Positions 1 to 36,460 of a stretch of DNA of 64,000 nucleotides are shown in pieces. Source of the stretch: Kudoa neothunni (lineage: Eukaryota > Animalia > Cnidaria); the NCBI GenBank assembly GCA_964304625.1, contig OZ199839.1, positions 8,402,560-8,466,559 on the forward strand, read 5' to 3'. The number at the start of each line of letters is the position of its first letter. The stretch's first letter is position 1. Both the position numbers and the translations under genes were made by a program. The notes under the pieces were generated by a model, which did not search any database, was not told the origin of the DNA, and saw only the letters and a program-made list of their open reading frames with translations.

Positions 1-693
1 CTGGGATAATTAATTTAAGTAAATGCTGTGATGCACTGTAACCGAATGAACTACATCTCTCGATCAAAAAATAAATCTCTCTAATCGTAAAATAACTAGC
101 ACAGATGGTCACTCCTAACAGTTAACTATTTGCAATTAATATATTTATTGAGAAAGTTTGATCAATTAATTAAACAATCGATTCATCGAAAATACTCCAA
201 CTACTACTACTACTACTACTATCATCTACACTCAATAATTCGTCCCAACGAACAACTCCTCTACAACCGATACCACTCATAGAGATGGCATTAGGGTTGG
301 TGGAGTGTGATAGGATTTATGAGTCATCTCCGAACTAAAAATATGTAAATATAAATGATAAGCAGATCAGATATAGATAGAACATGATTGTGCCAGATGG
401 TCGGGTAACCTAAGGACAATCTAGTCGATTTAATAACTCGGTGAAATGCTCCAACAAACTCACACCCCACACATATCAATTAACTCTCAGGGTGAACAGA
501 GTTGATGTCTGTAGTTGTACAAACAGACGTTATAATATAGAAAAACATGCGTGTAATTAAGGGATTAAACCATTGGAAACCACACCCGAAGGTTTAATCA
601 GCAAATAGTGAGATTACGAGAGGATTCCGTGGTAGTACGCAGACGATACAGCAGCATTTGGTATCAAATTTGTCCAAATATATCTTGTTCATA

Positions 694-1815
<1,122 letters not shown>

Positions 1816-5045: not shown

Positions 5046-7650
5046 GGGTTTTTTATTTATTTACAAAACTTGGAGATTATTGAGTTTTTTGAGATCATTT
5101 TATGGATAATAAGTTGTAGGATTATTTAAAAAGTAATATTTATTTTTGGATAATATGGGTAATTAAAATTTTTCCAAATATCAAAAAGATATCACGATCG
5201 TTGGTCACATGCGGCTTTCCGATTCTTGAATAATTGTTATTTGGTCAAATGTTCTTATTGTTCTGTGACAGTATTTGGGAATTTAAAAGTTATCTTAAAG
5301 TTTTCTAGTCTTTTAATAACATATTTCAAAGTTATTGACTTTATATTATTTCAAAGTATGAGTGGAAATTCAAACGGAATATGAAAGAGAGCGTGGTATA
5401 GTATTTGTTTCAATCAAGGTTGGTTAATGGTGGATATTAAAGATGCTAAGGGCGGCAATTCCAGCTGTTGAAAATGCTGTAGAGTAGCGGTTCCGTGAAT
5501 TATTTAAATAAAATCTGAATCATATTTTATTAACATACATTCATTATAATAAGGTATTTCTTAACATTAACATAATTATTAAAAATTTCAAATATATCCT
5601 TAGTTTATTATTGTTTTTTCTAAATATTTTATATTTATTACAAAATTTCCCTGTGTTTTTCAATTATTTTGAAAACAAATCTATAAAATCAAAAGTTGTT
5701 CGGATGGTTATTTGTTACAAACTAAAAATTTAAAAAAAATATTTCTAAATTTTGAAGATTATGCAATTATAATAATTACTCCTTTTACAACAGCTTATTA
5801 TTGCGAAACTAGATTTACATGCTTGTTACCATAAAAACACTCTCGAAATCGCTTATATGCGTGTTGCTTATTCAAATGTTTTGTCAGAATTCTGTGAAAT
5901 CATTGATAAAAACCAACTTCCAAAACATTATTAAATTTTCTTTAAATGTCTATTATATAATAATCATTCCATTGTTTATTCTTTATTTTAATCAACACAT
6001 TAATTAACAAAAATAGATATTTTATACAGCAACGATATCTCGATTATTATATGATCATTTTTCAATTAGAAATTTGATACGGATTTTATTTTTAAACATA
6101 TATATATATATATATATAATAATTCAACTAATTTCGTTAAATTTTTTATTTTTAAAATTATGCGTCATTGCCTATACCTGGTTAGAATTTTAATAACTTT
6201 TAAAAAATTACATGGAAGGATTTCATAGTTGTTAATTTTATTTAATACAAAAAATAATTCGTAAATTGGTGAGTTAAACTTTTAATTATATATATTTTAA
6301 AACAAAATCACTATATAATTCATTTACATAATAATTTTTTTAATAAAATTGAGGATATTAGATTAATAGTTTATGTTAACACGTTTGTTCCTACATTTTC
6401 CTGTTGAATCGAAAATTTATTGAATTAAACTAACATCAAAATTATATATAATTTGAAATTGTTTTTAATCTTTTTATTAAAATGAAAAATGGGCACGAAA
6501 AGGTTATAAAACTTGTAAGTATATTGGAATATATATTAAAACAAAAGGGGGTCCGCGAGGAAGAAATGTTAGGAAGCACCGATCTAGAACAATTATTATT
6601 GAATCGCATAATTTAAGAATAATTTCTATACGAATATTCATTATATTACAGACGACTGTTTTTATATTTATTGTATTAAACAAGAATGAAATTCACTTCA
6701 ATTTTATTAGCTCTAAGTTACAATGTCAATGATTATAATTGGTGAAGTCTGTCCAAAGTGTAAACTTATAGGATAGTTGTCGGAAAATAAGAGCCAATAT
6801 TAATTTAAGTTTCGATTTTATTAAATTTTTTAAAAAACACGGTATAGTTGGAGATTATATTGTGAAATAATAACGTGATCTTAAAAATAAAATCGCCTTT
6901 TAAAATTTTCTAATGCGAGCTGAAAAATTGAGATTGTGAATTTCTAGTTACTGTTTAACAACTTTATTTAATTTTCATTGATATAAAAATTAAAATTATT
7001 AAATATAGAGTCTAAGTAATATAATCTTTTTCTAAAATAAGTTTTAAATTTGATATTTGAGTTTAAAGCGCGGTCGGTTATCGAAAGAGAAAATATCTGT
7101 TCTCAAGGTGATTTATTATCTTATAAATAACAAAATTTCTTATAGAATTTGATGAAAATAATTATAATATAATAAATACTAATTCTCGGAGAATATCAAT
7201 AAGCAGGCAATCATTATTACACAGAATTAAATTTAGAAAATAATAATTAATTATTATTTAATTTTATATCAAATAGTTTAATTCTACTAAATAGTAATAT
7301 TATAATTATATTTTAATTTTACAATATTCTTACTTGCGGATTTCAAAATAATACAAGACTTTATACAAGTTTTAATTCGCTAATTTAATGATTAGAATTT
7401 TTTAGCCACGTTTATATATATAAATAAAAAATACGATTTTTTTTATGATGACGTTAAGATAGTATACTTATTCTTTGATTGTTTAAAAAATAATAATTAT
7501 TGAAAACAATAAAATTATAACTACATTTAATTAAAAAAATTATGAACCTAAGTAGATAAATTATACTAGGAAACAAAGTTAAATTATAGAATTAGCCGGG
7601 TTTGTTTCAAGAAATTTTCCAGTTGAAATAGTCAAATAGTCAATAGTCAA

Positions 7651-7688
7651 ATAAATAAATAAATAAATAAACAAACAAACAAACAAAC
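7651..7688. repeat. compound microsatellite (AAAT)n(AAAC)n
   Basis: Directly visible. Confidence 0.9.
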
Positions 7689-8020
7689 GTTATCAATAAG
7701 TAGACGCATATAACAATAAAGTTTCTTGATACATACCGAAATTTTTCTAAATCGGCTTAGAAATACATAAAAAAAGAAATAAGTGAATTTACAGTATTTT
7801 TAGAAATATCATCAATATTTTTGTAATGATTAAAATTAAACAAATACGCTGTTAATTCATTTAGAATTTAAAAATAAGTTGCATATTAAATAGTATCAAC
7901 ATTCAAAAAACAAACCGCATATGAAAAAATGGAACATAAGAGCCGCAATCAATAATTCTCAAATACATTTCCAAAACATATGACTACAACTAATTTTTAT
8001 TCATGTGTAACTACGTCTAT

Positions 8021-8739
8021 CTATATAAGATGTTCGGGTGGGTTTGGTTTATAATATTCCATGTAAAAAGAGTGATTTTCTCCTTCCACATGCCGAGGAT
8101 AATAGCTGCCTCTTTTATTTTTATCTCTTTTAAGGCGGTAGATGTAGAGAATGATCATCACAAAAAATGTGACTATAATTATCACCACAATCACACTTAG
8201 AATGATTTTGGTAGCCCTTGATCTTTTTAGTTTTTGTTCCTCTTCGGGACTTTTTGTGGTTTTGCGTCTTCGGATTGAAGCGGCTCTGATGTAAGTCGAT
8301 CCTATTCAAGTGTTAGAATGTGTTGTTAATTTTGTTCTAGGTCAATTCTCACGTTTTACTAATATTATTTCATTATTTTCAAATAAAGCGCAATAAATAT
8401 TTACTCTGGGGATTTTTAAAATTGTCCAAAACCTAGAATTTAGTTAACATCGTTATCTGTATGTGAATCCGCTCAAAAACACCTTATTAATCACATATTT
8501 CTCTGAGGGATTGCAATCTTTATTGATAAAAATTATGACTCATACAATAATAGTTTTACTTGAGTTGATGAGATGTTTTGAGGTCATTCGACTCTCGGAC
8601 CTATAACCTACTAAGCGGTAAAAGTCCCCAATACAATTTACTCGATAGAATTTGGTTGCGACGCGATATTACCACAACCAACATAAAATTCCATAACTCC
8701 CAACACACTCAGCACTAACATTATACCGTTAGGATTCAT
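8021..8739 (-). CDS. miniature Crumbs-like single-pass membrane protein, 160 aa, 5 exons (8739-8642, 8600-8560, 8517-8483, 8432-8405, 8301-8021)
   Basis: Four GT-AG introns (41, 42, 50, 103 nt) join in phase into 483 nt. The protein has a hydrophobic N-terminus, a short ectodomain, TM IILSVIVVIIIVTFFVMIILYIY and tail RLKRDKNKRGSYYPRHVEGENHSFYMEYYKPNPPEHLI*. The tail matches the Crumbs FERM motif GxYxPxxxE and PDZ motif E[R/H]LI. Confidence 0.8.
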
Positions 8740-8987
8740 TGTGTTACCTCCTATTTAACTTTATGGTTGATAACTGTGCGTGAACAACCTTCATTATACT
8801 CTTATCAACTATAGTAACGCTGGTTTGTTTATTAAGTTATTCTCAATTATGCTTATATTGGTCGTCCATAGAGTTCAATATCGATCCATAGAAGCACCAT
8901 CAAAACAGACAGTTTAACACTGTGATGCTGTGTTTAATTAAATTATTATCGCTGCGTTAGAGACGAAACAATATTGGAGCCATAACC

Positions 8988-10464
8988 TTACCACCAATTA
9001 CTAACAGAAAAACTAACACTTAATGATTCCACATAATGCCACCAAGAGTGAGGTATATACAGAATATCACCCTGTTCCACAATGCATTCCAAATAGTTTA
9101 TATTTTTGAAGAGTGGGTATTTTTCGGTGTTGGGATTGACAACATCAACCTGCATGAATTCAAATAGAAATTATATTGATGGGAGTCCTCATTAAAAATA
9201 CTTGACTTGTGTTGTGAAATTGATAATGATCGTGAGGATACATTTGTTGATTGTATTCAGGACTTACCAGATGGAAATATTTTGATCCAACGATCTGACA
9301 GAACACATTGTCGTAGGCATCAGTGTGAGAAGGGGAAACGGTGTGGGAGGGTCCAACCCAAAAATTCTGAATCACCTTATTGTTATTATTCTCTATCCAA
9401 CAGTAGTCGGGGATACTAAAACCAAACAACTCAGCTATTGCACCACACATCATCGTACAATATCTCGTTAGCCAATTCAGGGATCTGCTGAAATAGATTG
9501 TGTTGGGCCAGATAATAGGTAGTGGATGTGTTGGTACAGCAACGAAAAAAATCTTGGATAGTCATAAATTTCTGCCACCATTCTCCATCAGTATAACTAC
9601 TACCAACTTCAACCGGCACAGTTCGATGAGCGAACCTCCTACATTACGAATAACAGTATCAGACAGTTGTCTTTTGTTTCCACATCGAACCACACTAATA
9701 AATACTCCTACCTCATCCACACATCAAAATTCCACAATTTATCTTTCACAGCAGGCCATTCATTCATATAGCCTTTGATTAGAACCGGTTTCTTTTGATA
9801 ATATTCCCTCAAAAATGTGTCCAATCCAAGCTTTTCCTTGGTATCTACTGGATATTTAATAGAATATTTGGTGTTCGGGGATCGGTTTGAATTCACAGCC
9901 ATTTCTGAATTAGAATCTACATCAATATCAGCACCAAAAAATTAATCAGTCTTATTGCCATAATAGTATACTTGGATCAGTTGACAATGAGTCAATGTCC
10001 ATCAACAAACTGTTCACATAAGAGGCACAAATTGTTAACAAATTCGCCCCTCTGTTACCATCCCCACATATATTAGAAATGGGCGCACCCAATAAAAGAC
10101 CGTAATCCAATGTGAGTAAAGAGTTTTTTAGTGAATCCGTTTTTAAGTGTACATAACTTTTTAACAACGATATCCATGAATATAATTGACGAAAATGAAT
10201 GTCAACAGTTTTCCATTCGTAACTGTTGAATATCTCATCCAATAAGTATAATATTGTAGTGAGTGCTTTCAAAATTTTATCACTCCATTCAACATTATTT
10301 AAGTCCGCTTGATGGTCAATCCAATAAACACATTTCGAATACAGACGCTCTATTAGATTTAGACAAATTTGTTCGGTTTGACGTATATTTTTTGGAATTA
10401 TTGTTAGATGCGCCCATTTTTCGTGTGATATTATAATGTTTTCCGAGAAAAAAATGTCTACCAT
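8988..10464 (-). CDS. KDM8: JmjC-domain hydroxylase KDM8/JMJD5, 5 exons (start could be 10500)
   Basis: Spliced motifs LDYGLLLGAPI, KPVLIKGYMNEWPA, HRTVPVEVGSSYTD, YLAQHNLFQQIPEL, WVGPSHTVSPSHTD (HxD), GDILYIPHSWWHYV (distal H) and SFSVSNWW*. Confidence 0.92.
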
Positions 10465-10573
10465 AAGAAAAAATAATAAAAAATATGGTTGCGTGCGCAT
10501 GCCACTACTCCCTAAAGTTAAGTTAAGTTAGGTTACAGTTACAGTTACAGTTAAGTTAGAATTTGTGAGTTAA
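10465..10573. promoter_or_regulatory. compact bidirectional promoter with NRF1-like GCGTGCGCATGC and GTTA(A/CA/G) repeats
   Basis: About 110 bp separate the divergent start codons of KDM8 and ATP6V0E. Motif at 10490-10502, repeats at 10517-10559. Confidence 0.55.
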
Positions 10574-10934
10574 ATGAATGCTAGTTGGATAATTCTTATA
10601 GCGGTCACTGTGTGTTGGCTGTTGCTAACTTTTGTGGTACCATTTTTCGTATGGACAAGGACACAAATGTAATTTAGCCCATGGTTTGTGTTATAAGCGG
10701 AATTTGATAATATTTGATATTTTATCGGTAGGATGATACGAGTATCTATTGCGATGACCGCTACTTGTATCTATTTGTCGTAATTTTTTTTCTTTTATCG
10801 ATCTGAATTCATTACTATAAAATCACATTTGTTGTAGATGGCTATGTATGTATTGCTTCCAGCTGAACCCCCTAGTTGGACCCCAGATGAAACCGAACCT
10901 GATACTCAACTTGATCCCTATTTGGAGAAATTGA
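10574..10934 (+). CDS. ATP6V0E: V-type ATPase V0 subunit e, 3 exons
   Basis: Spliced MNASWIILIAVTVCWLLLTFVVPFFVWTRTQM|MIRVSIAMTATCIYLS|WLCMYCFQLNPLVGPQMKPN...WRN*: two TM helices plus the QLNPLxGP signature. Not in the ORF track. Confidence 0.9.
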
Positions 10935-35189: not shown

Positions 35190-36090
35190 TGAATGATCCC
35201 AAGAACCTATTCCACAGATTTGCATGGTTTTTGCGCCTCCATTAGAATTCAAACAAAAACTCATCTATGACACTTTGGACAATTTCTCCGTTATCATTGA
35301 TGGATGATGTTCGATTTCTTGGAGAAATTCAATATTTTATAGCGTTCCATGTACCTTCGATGGTGTTTGTATGTGCGCCAGTCACGGAGTCGACAAATTC
35401 TACACTATGGTTGATTTGGAGATGATGATAATGTTGGTGGAGATTTTGGCAGCTCGGGAAGCAATCTTTTATAATGATTGAGCCTTCTCTGACATACGTC
35501 TTAATAAGAGAGATTAAAGTCTCTGCGTTTCTGTCAGGAACTTCAATAAGGAAAATCCTTCTCTCTTCGGTTCTTTCAACTCCACCAACGGTCCAGGCAC
35601 CATTAACAGGATGTTCACGGTGATATTTATTTTTTCCGAATTTGGATTCGTCAATTTCCATGACTATACCTGGGCCTCCTATTATGATATTTTCGAAATC
35701 TAAACTATCAGCCATTAACTGTCTTAAGTACATCGAGTAGCTTGAAATAGTATTTGTCGAGTGTCCAGTTATAAAACCGCGTTGTGTTGATTTAACTCCA
35801 GCCAACCAATGGTACGGAAATTCAAGCACCTCATTTATTGGCAATTTGCACAAAGAAAAGAAAGTACCATTGAAAAATGACACTTTTTTCCCACAATCTT
35901 TTTTTGTACAACGCCATTGTTTGCGATTTACAGAGAAACAAATGTTTCCGCAATAAACGTAATGGCTTGGCTTGTTTATTATCCCTTCTTCAAATAGGAA
36001 TTTTATTGCAGCATCTTCAGAATAGAAAATATTTTGCAATTTCTTCAAAGGAGGAATCTTTTTTAATAGAATGGACAGAGCGCCGCACAT
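35190..36090 (-). mobile_element. Merlin / ISXO2 (IS1595-like) DDE transposase
   Basis: 278-aa ORF with WRC..KDC, MEIDESKFGKNKYHR, WTVGGVER, PDRNAETL, INHSVEFVDSVTGAHTNTIEGTW. Confidence 0.9.
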
Positions 36091-36460
36091 ATGCGAGATC
36101 AGCCTATTAAAATACTCTATGAAAGTTATTTTATTGTTAAGGATTACGCTACAACGACTTGTCAATATTGGCGATGTGAAAAGAGGGCTTGTAAGGACAA
36201 GCTTACAACTACTCTATTAGATAATATTTCGAATATTGAAAACCGTGGTAGTCATAACCATATTGTAAGCGACTATGACATTGAGAGGGCCGAATTTGCT
36301 GGCAAAATAAATTCATTATCGCAATCTACACAGTATTCCACAAGTAAAGTTTTCTCAGTTGCAACTACCACACCGAATATTCATGATTTACCCCTTGTTC
36401 CCAAGAGAACGGTTTATAAAAATATTCAACACCAAAGAAAGAGGAAAAATATTTTAATTA
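36091..36460 (+). mobile_element. MULE transposase N-terminal FLYWCH zinc-finger fragment
   Basis: YWRCEKRACK...GSHNH pattern. Confidence 0.7.

Follow-up and report, generated by a model that had tools for sequence, protein, structure and literature searches.

Can an animal make a Crumbs protein that keeps the polarity tail and dispenses with the large ectodomain? The question is raised by a locus on the minus strand of a 64,000-nucleotide (nt) stretch of the Kudoa neothunni genome, hereafter the window (contig OZ199839.1, which is C2:8,402,560-8,466,559 in the 40.26-Mb, four-contig assembly that we searched). The original prediction had described there a gene of five small exons whose product ends in a Crumbs-type cytoplasmic tail and lacks EGF and laminin-G modules. 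Judged from its sequence, the tail encoded by the last exon is homologous to Crumbs tails, and this exon is probably a genuine coding exon. We further consider it fairly likely, with a probability of roughly 0.6, that the exon belongs to a functional, small single-pass gene of the Crumbs family that resembles vertebrate CRB3.

Crumbs proteins carry a tail of fewer than 40 amino acids (aa) with a FERM-binding motif, RxxxGxYxPS, and a class II PDZ ligand, [E/D][R/K][L/I][I/L] (PMC5968619). In Drosophila Crumbs, a type-I membrane protein, the tail has 37 aa (PMC3564977), and Tyr10 and Glu16 within it are essential (PMC4359734, PMC3564977). The terminal exon, which is single copy in the genome, encodes a 31-aa basic juxtamembrane stretch reading ...IRRRKTTKSPEEEQKLKRSRATK, followed by a 23-aa transmembrane helix, a 38-aa cytoplasmic tail and a stop. 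Its FERM region reads K-N-K-R-G-S-Y-Y-P-R against R-x3-G-x-Y-x-P-S, with G, Y and P kept and R replaced by K and S by R; sponge Crumbs keep two to four of the five residues of this motif (PMC5968619). Numbered from the first Arg past the membrane, Y12 and E18 lie six residues apart, the same +6 spacing as Y10 and E16 of Drosophila. In an alignment with 12 Crumbs tails (A1), G, Y, P and E were invariant, as were K(-8), E(-3), L(-1) and I(0) at the C terminus. The tail ends in EHLI, so that position -2 is His, outside the [R/K] of the strict ligand. Other deviations at this position are EGLI in Caenorhabditis elegans CRB-3 (PMC4359734), ETLI in glass sponges, a known exception (PMC5968619), and ESLI in a metagenome contig (L145, whose tail ends EESLI, a natural variant). 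A literature search on an EHLI ending with PDZ domains found nothing relevant.

The similarity extends beyond these motifs to the helix and tail as a whole. Reference tails were collected by scanning metagenome contigs with the degenerate DNA pattern G-x-Y-x-P-S-x2-E-x17-E-R-L-I-stop, and all of the returned loci (117/117) encode a canonical Crumbs tail of 37 aa behind a transmembrane helix, most of them with EGF-like cysteine patterns 0.25-3 kb upstream. Seven vertebrate-looking contigs (L062, L085, L101, L149, L151, L164, L166) were left out of the reference set, and a profile (A2) was built from 24 Crumbs helix-plus-tail sequences with <75% mutual identity. Upon aligning helix and tail with A2 by hhalign, we obtained a probability of 93% (P 3.3e-7) over 40 columns that reach the last residue, at 40% identity, whereas the tail of a Caspr/neurexin-IV-like gene from the same genome reached 10%, with only the helix and G-x-Y aligned. 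None of 392 decoys in which the helix was kept and the tail shuffled reached the real score (best 27.2 versus 35.0). The best single reference tail (L104) gave 34.7 bits by BLASTP (E 1e-9 for that comparison alone), with 18/57 identities across helix and tail and one 1-residue gap, and the helix IILSVIVVIIIVTFFVMIILYIY aligned with the transmembrane segment of the Crumbs sequences. A C-terminally anchored position-specific scoring matrix (PSSM) scored 25.2 bits, as compared to -21 +/- 5.7 for the null and a maximum of 12.4 among 20,000 nulls. By hhalign, BLASTP and PSSM alike, helix and tail therefore resemble those of bona fide Crumbs.

The same comparisons bear on the notion that the reading frame is a chance opening without biological meaning. 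AT-rich DNA yields many hydrophobic open reading frames (ORFs), and three other ORFs of helix-plus-tail appearance occur in 273 kb of DNA from this genome. However, under a six-frame composition model the expected number of relaxed FERM-plus-PDZ signatures per genome is 0.07, falling to 1.4e-5 when a helix must adjoin the signature, and the profile, PSSM and shuffle tests also oppose chance, which makes this explanation scarcely credible. The ending P-E-x-[LF]-I-stop on its own occurs at chance frequency (51 sites in the genome versus 44 control sites), but only one of the 51 sites has a helix and a FERM motif before it, namely the gene studied here. Four genomic P-E-R-L-I-stop sites (L010, L018, L023, L033) were inspected and rejected, as they have no Crumbs context. 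Many of the P-E-x-F-I-stop matches belong to a repeat family with at least nine sites on C1-C3 (L019, L021, L030, L186, L187), in which the ORF ends ...IIILIIYLWNSPEHFI followed by a stop; this family is probably a mobile element.

Several results weigh against the Crumbs assignment. The search pattern for the reference tails fixes nine profile columns and thereby inflates their weight; in a fixed register, the other 28 columns gave p values of 8e-4 relative to background composition and of 5e-3 relative to shuffled sequences, the signal outside the fixed columns being carried by R7, E18, M24, K(-8) and P-x-P. (A free-column PSSM maximised over all alignments, at 18 bits, ran in an incoherent register and was replaced by the fixed-register test.) Using hmmsearch with a 20-sequence hidden Markov model of the tail, we obtained 7.7 bits, a score matched by 6/5,000 shuffles, and the whole ORF scored 0.2 after bias correction; on this score alone, genome-wide significance would not be reached, although we judged plain hmmsearch to be unsuited as a statistic for a short motif region anchored at the C terminus. 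A phmmer search of the tail against 1.84 billion proteins returned only two repeat-driven junk matches, and phmmer against the PDB returned nothing. Two signature positions are altered, with Arg in place of Ser13 and His in place of Arg(-2), and the middle segment of the tail, from Glu16 to Lys(-8), is a residue short. In a comparison of ESM-Atlas features of helix and tail, glycophorin-C ranked first, level at 0.91 with a 'crumbs homolog 1-like' cluster in second place, and syndecan followed at 0.87; the Crumbs cluster shared the most features, which we treat as a lead only. In the genome, L27, PB1/Par6 and PATJ were not found by searches that overlook expected genes as well. Many frame-consistent models compete for the 5' exons, and in three raw-read RNA runs under the same species label no reads fell on 6800-10800 of the window, an interval that includes the neighbouring KDM8-like gene. 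As that gene also had zero reads, the runs are uninformative for the gene studied here.

Some of these points favor a lineage-specific type-I protein whose FERM/4.1 site and class II PDZ ligand arose by convergence, in the manner of glycophorin C, syndecan and neurexin, rather than by descent from Crumbs. Like the product described here, such proteins cross the membrane once, have a FERM/4.1 site of the form G-[ST]-Y beside the membrane and carry a class II PDZ ligand for MPP-family proteins or CASK. Their tails differ from the one here in having Glu at Tyr+4, no Pro, an aromatic E-[FY]-[YF]-[AVI] ending and other lengths. Besides the ESM ranking and the weak ordinary HMMER statistics, convergence is favored by the Pfam Syndecan family (PF01034, neurexin-type tails included), which gave 17.9 bits on the helix and juxtamembrane region (profile positions 12-44, i.e., the helix and the first tail residues), below the cut-off of 25.2. 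Similar motif pairs also recur in the unrelated ICAM-2, syndecans and nectin (PMC3564977). By contrast, the alignment with A2 runs through the full tail and includes R7, E18, M24, K(-8) and P-x-P outside the two motifs; Glu sits at Tyr+6 and Pro at Tyr+2 as in Crumbs, whereas the neurexin-type tail of this genome reads G-C-Y-Q-T-E-E and ends GYI; and Pfam gave only sub-threshold, transmembrane-type matches on the last exon and none for the tail alone, which has no EFYA or EYFI ending. The sub-cut-off score, the lack of a match for the tail alone and the EHLI ending do not place the protein among the syndecans. Taking the profile, decoy, PSSM and Pfam results together, we assign the tail to the Crumbs type, and the original prediction holds against the test that it had set itself, namely a better score with syndecan-, neurexin- or glycophorin-type tails; convergence appears unlikely. 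A small ORF with a syndecan-like helix (IAGIVIGVLFAVLAVVAVFCLISKKYD) does occur elsewhere in the assembly (C1:15850585-15850692, plus strand, L058), with a Pfam Syndecan score of 16.3 bits, below the cut-off, and no EFYA-type ending downstream of it.

We found the 5' part of the gene to be less sharply defined than its tail. The predicted exon coordinates, the GT..AG flanks throughout and a frame that closes to 160 aa were all reproduced (98, 41, 35, 28 and 281 nt), and the two micro-exons sum to exactly 63 nt, so that the frame closes with or without both. The model is not unique, however: exhaustive enumeration between the ATG at 8739 and the stop codon, allowing GT-AG introns of 30-400 nt and at most five exons, gave 13,726 open, frame-consistent models, of which it is one, and a three-exon model (8739-8642, 8600-8560, 8301-8021; 126 aa) shares three good splice sites with it and fits equally well. 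Sequence alone cannot decide between the 126-aa and the 160-aa model, and the exact five-exon structure remains tentative and rather doubtful. Most likely, the modeled 5' part comprises a signal-peptide exon at 8739-8642 and one to three tiny exons, for a total of 126-160 aa. The product of exon 1, MNPNGIMLVLSVLGVMEFYVGCG, resembles a signal peptide. In these models the ectodomain would be basic, roughly 55-75 aa long and free of any recognisable domain; the predicted length of ~75 aa results from the five-exon model, while the shorter model fits equally. A Pfam scan of exon 1 and of the last exon found no domain. If either were transcribed, the two candidate models would fall within the size range of short Crumbs (~100-160 aa with a domain-free ectodomain). 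Basic clusters RRRK and KLKR occur in the predicted ectodomain, and the earlier suggestion that RRRK is a convertase site is speculation.

Upstream of this gene lies a KDM8/JMJD5-like JmjC gene, which ends ...SNWW and a stop at 8988-8990, 248 nt from the proposed ATG, in keeping with the predicted ~250 bp. Its four introns measure 43, 52, 55 and 73 nt, and tiny introns are therefore normal here, while its proximity leaves little room for further upstream exons. This arrangement bears on whether the exon could be the end of a larger gene, with EGF and laminin-G exons beyond KDM8 and KDM8 nested in an intron. Canonical Crumbs tails in metagenome contigs usually do have EGF-like exons 0.25-3 kb upstream. 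Yet we counted 0 EGF-like cysteine patterns in 10 kb upstream on the gene strand, the EGF and laminin-G matches of the genome lie elsewhere, and the introns here measure 43-73 nt. A larger gene is hence very improbable, and the prediction that no upstream EGF or laminin-G exon joins this one stands.

No large Crumbs was found in the assembly by six-frame laminin-G, EGF and A2 searches, which are insensitive. The laminin-G search gave four matches, all in a cadherin-like or a Caspr-like gene, and the EGF search gave five, all isolated calcium-binding modules without a tandem array; these low numbers suggest that the toolkit for matrix and adhesion is very reduced or that the search is insensitive. 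A six-frame search with A2 returned nothing, its first-look filter being insensitive. As the searches are insensitive (PB1 and L27 were also blank), the absence of a large Crumbs is provisional. The ectodomain of EGF and laminin-G modules that is absent from the gene studied here characterizes the large forms only, and CRB3 and CRB-3 also lack it. The laminin-G matches mark a classic-cadherin-like gene with a 997-aa open frame (C1:3881000-3884100, minus strand; L006:5060-8053) and the Caspr/neurexin-IV-like gene (C3:6092300-6096000, L008), whose tail, with G-C-Y-Q-T-E-E, ends ETGYI.

Among the polarity partners that were named for a check of the genome, a PALS1-like MAGUK is present, and Par6 and PATJ did not emerge from the insensitive searches. 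The best solved match of the MAGUK exon encoding PDZ and SH3 is PALS1/MPP5 (4WSI, 7M4R, 2.3e-11), ahead of Dlg4 (1.5e-6), while its guanylate-kinase exon is nearer Dlg. Its L27 domains were not detectable by PDB search, and it had no match in a collection of 5.8 billion proteins, which lacks the proteome studied. A second PDZ-like exon lies ~0.7-1 kb upstream of it and may be another gene. At least four FERM-domain loci occur in the genome. For the PALS1 PDZ, roles have been assigned to E, R, L and I of ERLI: Thr270, Ser281 and Arg282 hold Glu(-3), and Asn315 hydrogen-bonds Arg(-2) (PMC4356366). In our alignments the MAGUK PDZ keeps Thr270, Ser281 and Arg282, while Asn315 is replaced by Glu and Phe318 by Leu. 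Replacing Arg(-2) by Ala lowers the affinity for PALS1 only ~6-fold, and Par6 takes any residue at -2 (PMC4356366), so EHLI is a plausible ligand. The replacement of Asn315 by Glu beside a His ligand is suggestive of co-variation; the predicted co-evolution of the R-to-H change with its PDZ partner would rest on this one substitution in the PALS1-like PDZ.

We also considered that the last exon is a relic of a large Crumbs that lost its ectodomain exons and is untranscribed or gives no functional protein. The lack of RNA support (in runs that are blank on KDM8 too) and the incompletely defined upstream exons are consistent with this, KDM8 occupies the place expected for ectodomain exons, and when the last exon was compared by word-indexed search with the 5.8-billion-protein collection, which lacks the proteome studied, the tail turned up in no protein. 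That lack is indicated by a Rac-like small GTPase exon in the window (1357-1812, plus strand), which has no self-match there. Against a relic, 94 codons remain open where ~7% of codons are stops, the acceptor is intact, and an in-frame ATG and a signal-peptide-like exon lie at a fitting distance. The acceptor reads ttgaatAG/GA (the slash marks the exon boundary), with a CTAAC branch-like site 14 nt upstream, and the exon has a GC content of 0.37 versus 0.22 in the downstream spacer. Furthermore, the identity of the Rac-like exon to any Rac in the 5.8-billion-protein collection is only 55-62%, which points to a very fast-evolving lineage. Since all functionally essential residues of the tail are kept in such a genome, selection on the tail may be inferred; the PALS1-like partner is likewise retained. 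We regard a relic as improbable, and a functional short Crumbs gene as the better account of the exon.

If the gene is functional, its product may act as follows. After cleavage of the signal peptide, the membrane-anchored protein would expose a short, basic ectodomain without domains. The juxtamembrane G-S-Y-Y-P-x3-E could dock FERM proteins, e.g., of the moesin or Yurt type; Ser11 would match the second of the aPKC sites in Drosophila Crumbs, of which the first is absent here. EHLI would enter the PDZ groove of the PALS1-like MAGUK via Ile(0), Leu(-1) and Glu(-3), as in PMC4356366, and possibly that of Par6 too. An apical scaffold could in this way be nucleated without an EGF/laminin-G ectodomain.

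Short Crumbs proteins are already known, and the gene is an added member of this kind rather than a new kind. Vertebrate CRB3, by description, resembles the predicted product in its small size and type-I topology, in a short ectodomain that has no recognisable domain, in its single helix and in a ~40-aa tail that contains G-x-Y-x-P, a proline-rich stretch and E-x-L-I; CRB3 binds PALS1 and Par6 (PMC4359734, PMC3564977). It differs in ending ERLI rather than EHLI, in having Ser rather than Arg after the Pro, and in lacking the strongly basic ectodomain predicted here. The large CRB1 and CRB2 are present in vertebrates as well, while our searches of the genome studied here found no large form. 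C. elegans, too, has large forms, CRB-1 and EAT-20, beside a short one. This short form, CRB-3 (C35B8.4), has 100 aa, no extracellular domains and no signal peptide, keeps Tyr10 and Glu16 and ends EGLI (PMC4359734); as described, it is similarly an invertebrate short Crumbs with the Tyr/Glu pair kept and a non-canonical position -2, but the gene here has a candidate signal-peptide exon. A nematode origin of the genome, to which the likeness to crb-3 might point, is doubtful, as a search for the nematode cuticle-collagen N domain had no match; this is weak evidence, since the control of that search had no match either. With canonical invertebrate Crumbs the helix and 37-aa tail align end to end (32% identity for helix and tail with L104, 40% for the tail with the profile), whereas the ~30 EGF repeats and the laminin-G modules are absent here, and the tail lacks one residue between Glu16 and Lys(-8) and carries two additional membrane-proximal residues. 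Independent miniaturisation, as originally proposed, and inheritance of a CRB3-like paralogue would look the same on the data here.

The added interest of the gene lies in its possibly being the sole Crumbs of a reduced animal. That a drastically reduced, fast-evolving animal retains as its only Crumbs a mini-protein of CRB3 type, which ends EHLI and is paired with an altered PALS1-like PDZ, is a proposal that we consider rather unlikely. If true, a whole animal lineage would run apical polarity on the Crumbs tail alone, with ligand and PDZ changed together. In Drosophila, rescue experiments reportedly showed that the membrane-bound Crumbs tail carries most of the function of the protein; a lineage that keeps only helix and tail would be a natural experiment supporting such a tail-centred function and would help to establish what a minimal Crumbs module comprises. 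Annotation that relies on ORFs or on words misses short multi-exon genes of this kind, while a tail profile can recover them, and the 117 reference tails are reusable for this purpose.

Features of the locus and of the candidate partner gene (window coordinates unless a contig is given; a slash marks an exon boundary)
Feature	Position	Strand	Remarks
Proposed exon 1	8642..8739	-	98 nt; ATG and MNPNGIMLVLSVLGVMEFYVGCG...; donor GA/GTAAAT; in ORF 8638-8739
Proposed exon 2	8560..8600	-	41 nt; flanks TATAG/ and /GTAAAA; in both the three-exon and the five-exon model
Proposed micro-exon 3, optional	8483..8517	-	35 nt; acceptor TAAAG/, weak donor /GTGTTT
Proposed micro-exon 4, optional	8405..8432	-	28 nt; acceptor TCTAG/, donor /GTAAAT
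Terminal exon	8021..8301	-	281 nt including stop TAG 8021-8023; 94-codon open frame
Transmembrane helix IILSVIVVIIIVTFFVMIILYIY	8138..8206	-	23 aa, no glycine; read from translation
Cytoplasmic tail RLKRDKNKRGSYYPRHVEGENHSFYMEYYKPNPPEHLI	8024..8137	-	38 aa, Crumbs type
FERM-binding motif G-S-Y-Y-P-R-H-V-E	8084..8110	-	Pro at Tyr+2, Glu at Tyr+6
C-terminal K-P-N-P-P-E-H-L-I	8024..8050	-	proline-rich stretch, then PDZ-binding motif EHLI (canonical ERLI)
AATAAA, possible polyadenylation signal	7996..8001	-	20 nt past the stop codon
KDM8/JMJD5-like JmjC gene, upstream neighbour	8988..10500	-	five exons; Cupin_8 6e-16 and 1e-14
MPP-type MAGUK (PDZ-SH3-GuK)	C1:1996180-2000310 (L041, L043)	-	PDZ, SH3 and GuK at C1:1.9962-1.9994 Mb

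The AATAAA hexamer behind the stop codon is weak support for a transcript end, as it is frequent by chance in AT-rich DNA such as that of the window (~31% GC). Elsewhere in the window, a tandem repeat at 2516-2834 has open frames on both strands that read (MYVD)n or (CMLI)n, giving false ORFs and a false helix-plus-tail decoy, and a 278-aa ORF at 35329-36165 (minus strand) encodes an ISXO2-like DDE transposase domain (PF12762, 1.8e-11).

Among the metagenome contigs, one (L113, Ga0209786_1034900, 102-317, plus strand) carries a 71-aa ORF that consists of MGEASSFSAL, a helix and a canonical Crumbs tail, and is either a short Crumbs or a mere exon boundary. Furthermore, six contigs of gutless-worm type (L065, L091, L100, L112, L126, L161) encode canonical Crumbs tails with no EGF-like pattern in the 2.5-4 kb upstream of them; long introns, or paralogues of short Crumbs type in the annelid hosts, may account for this.

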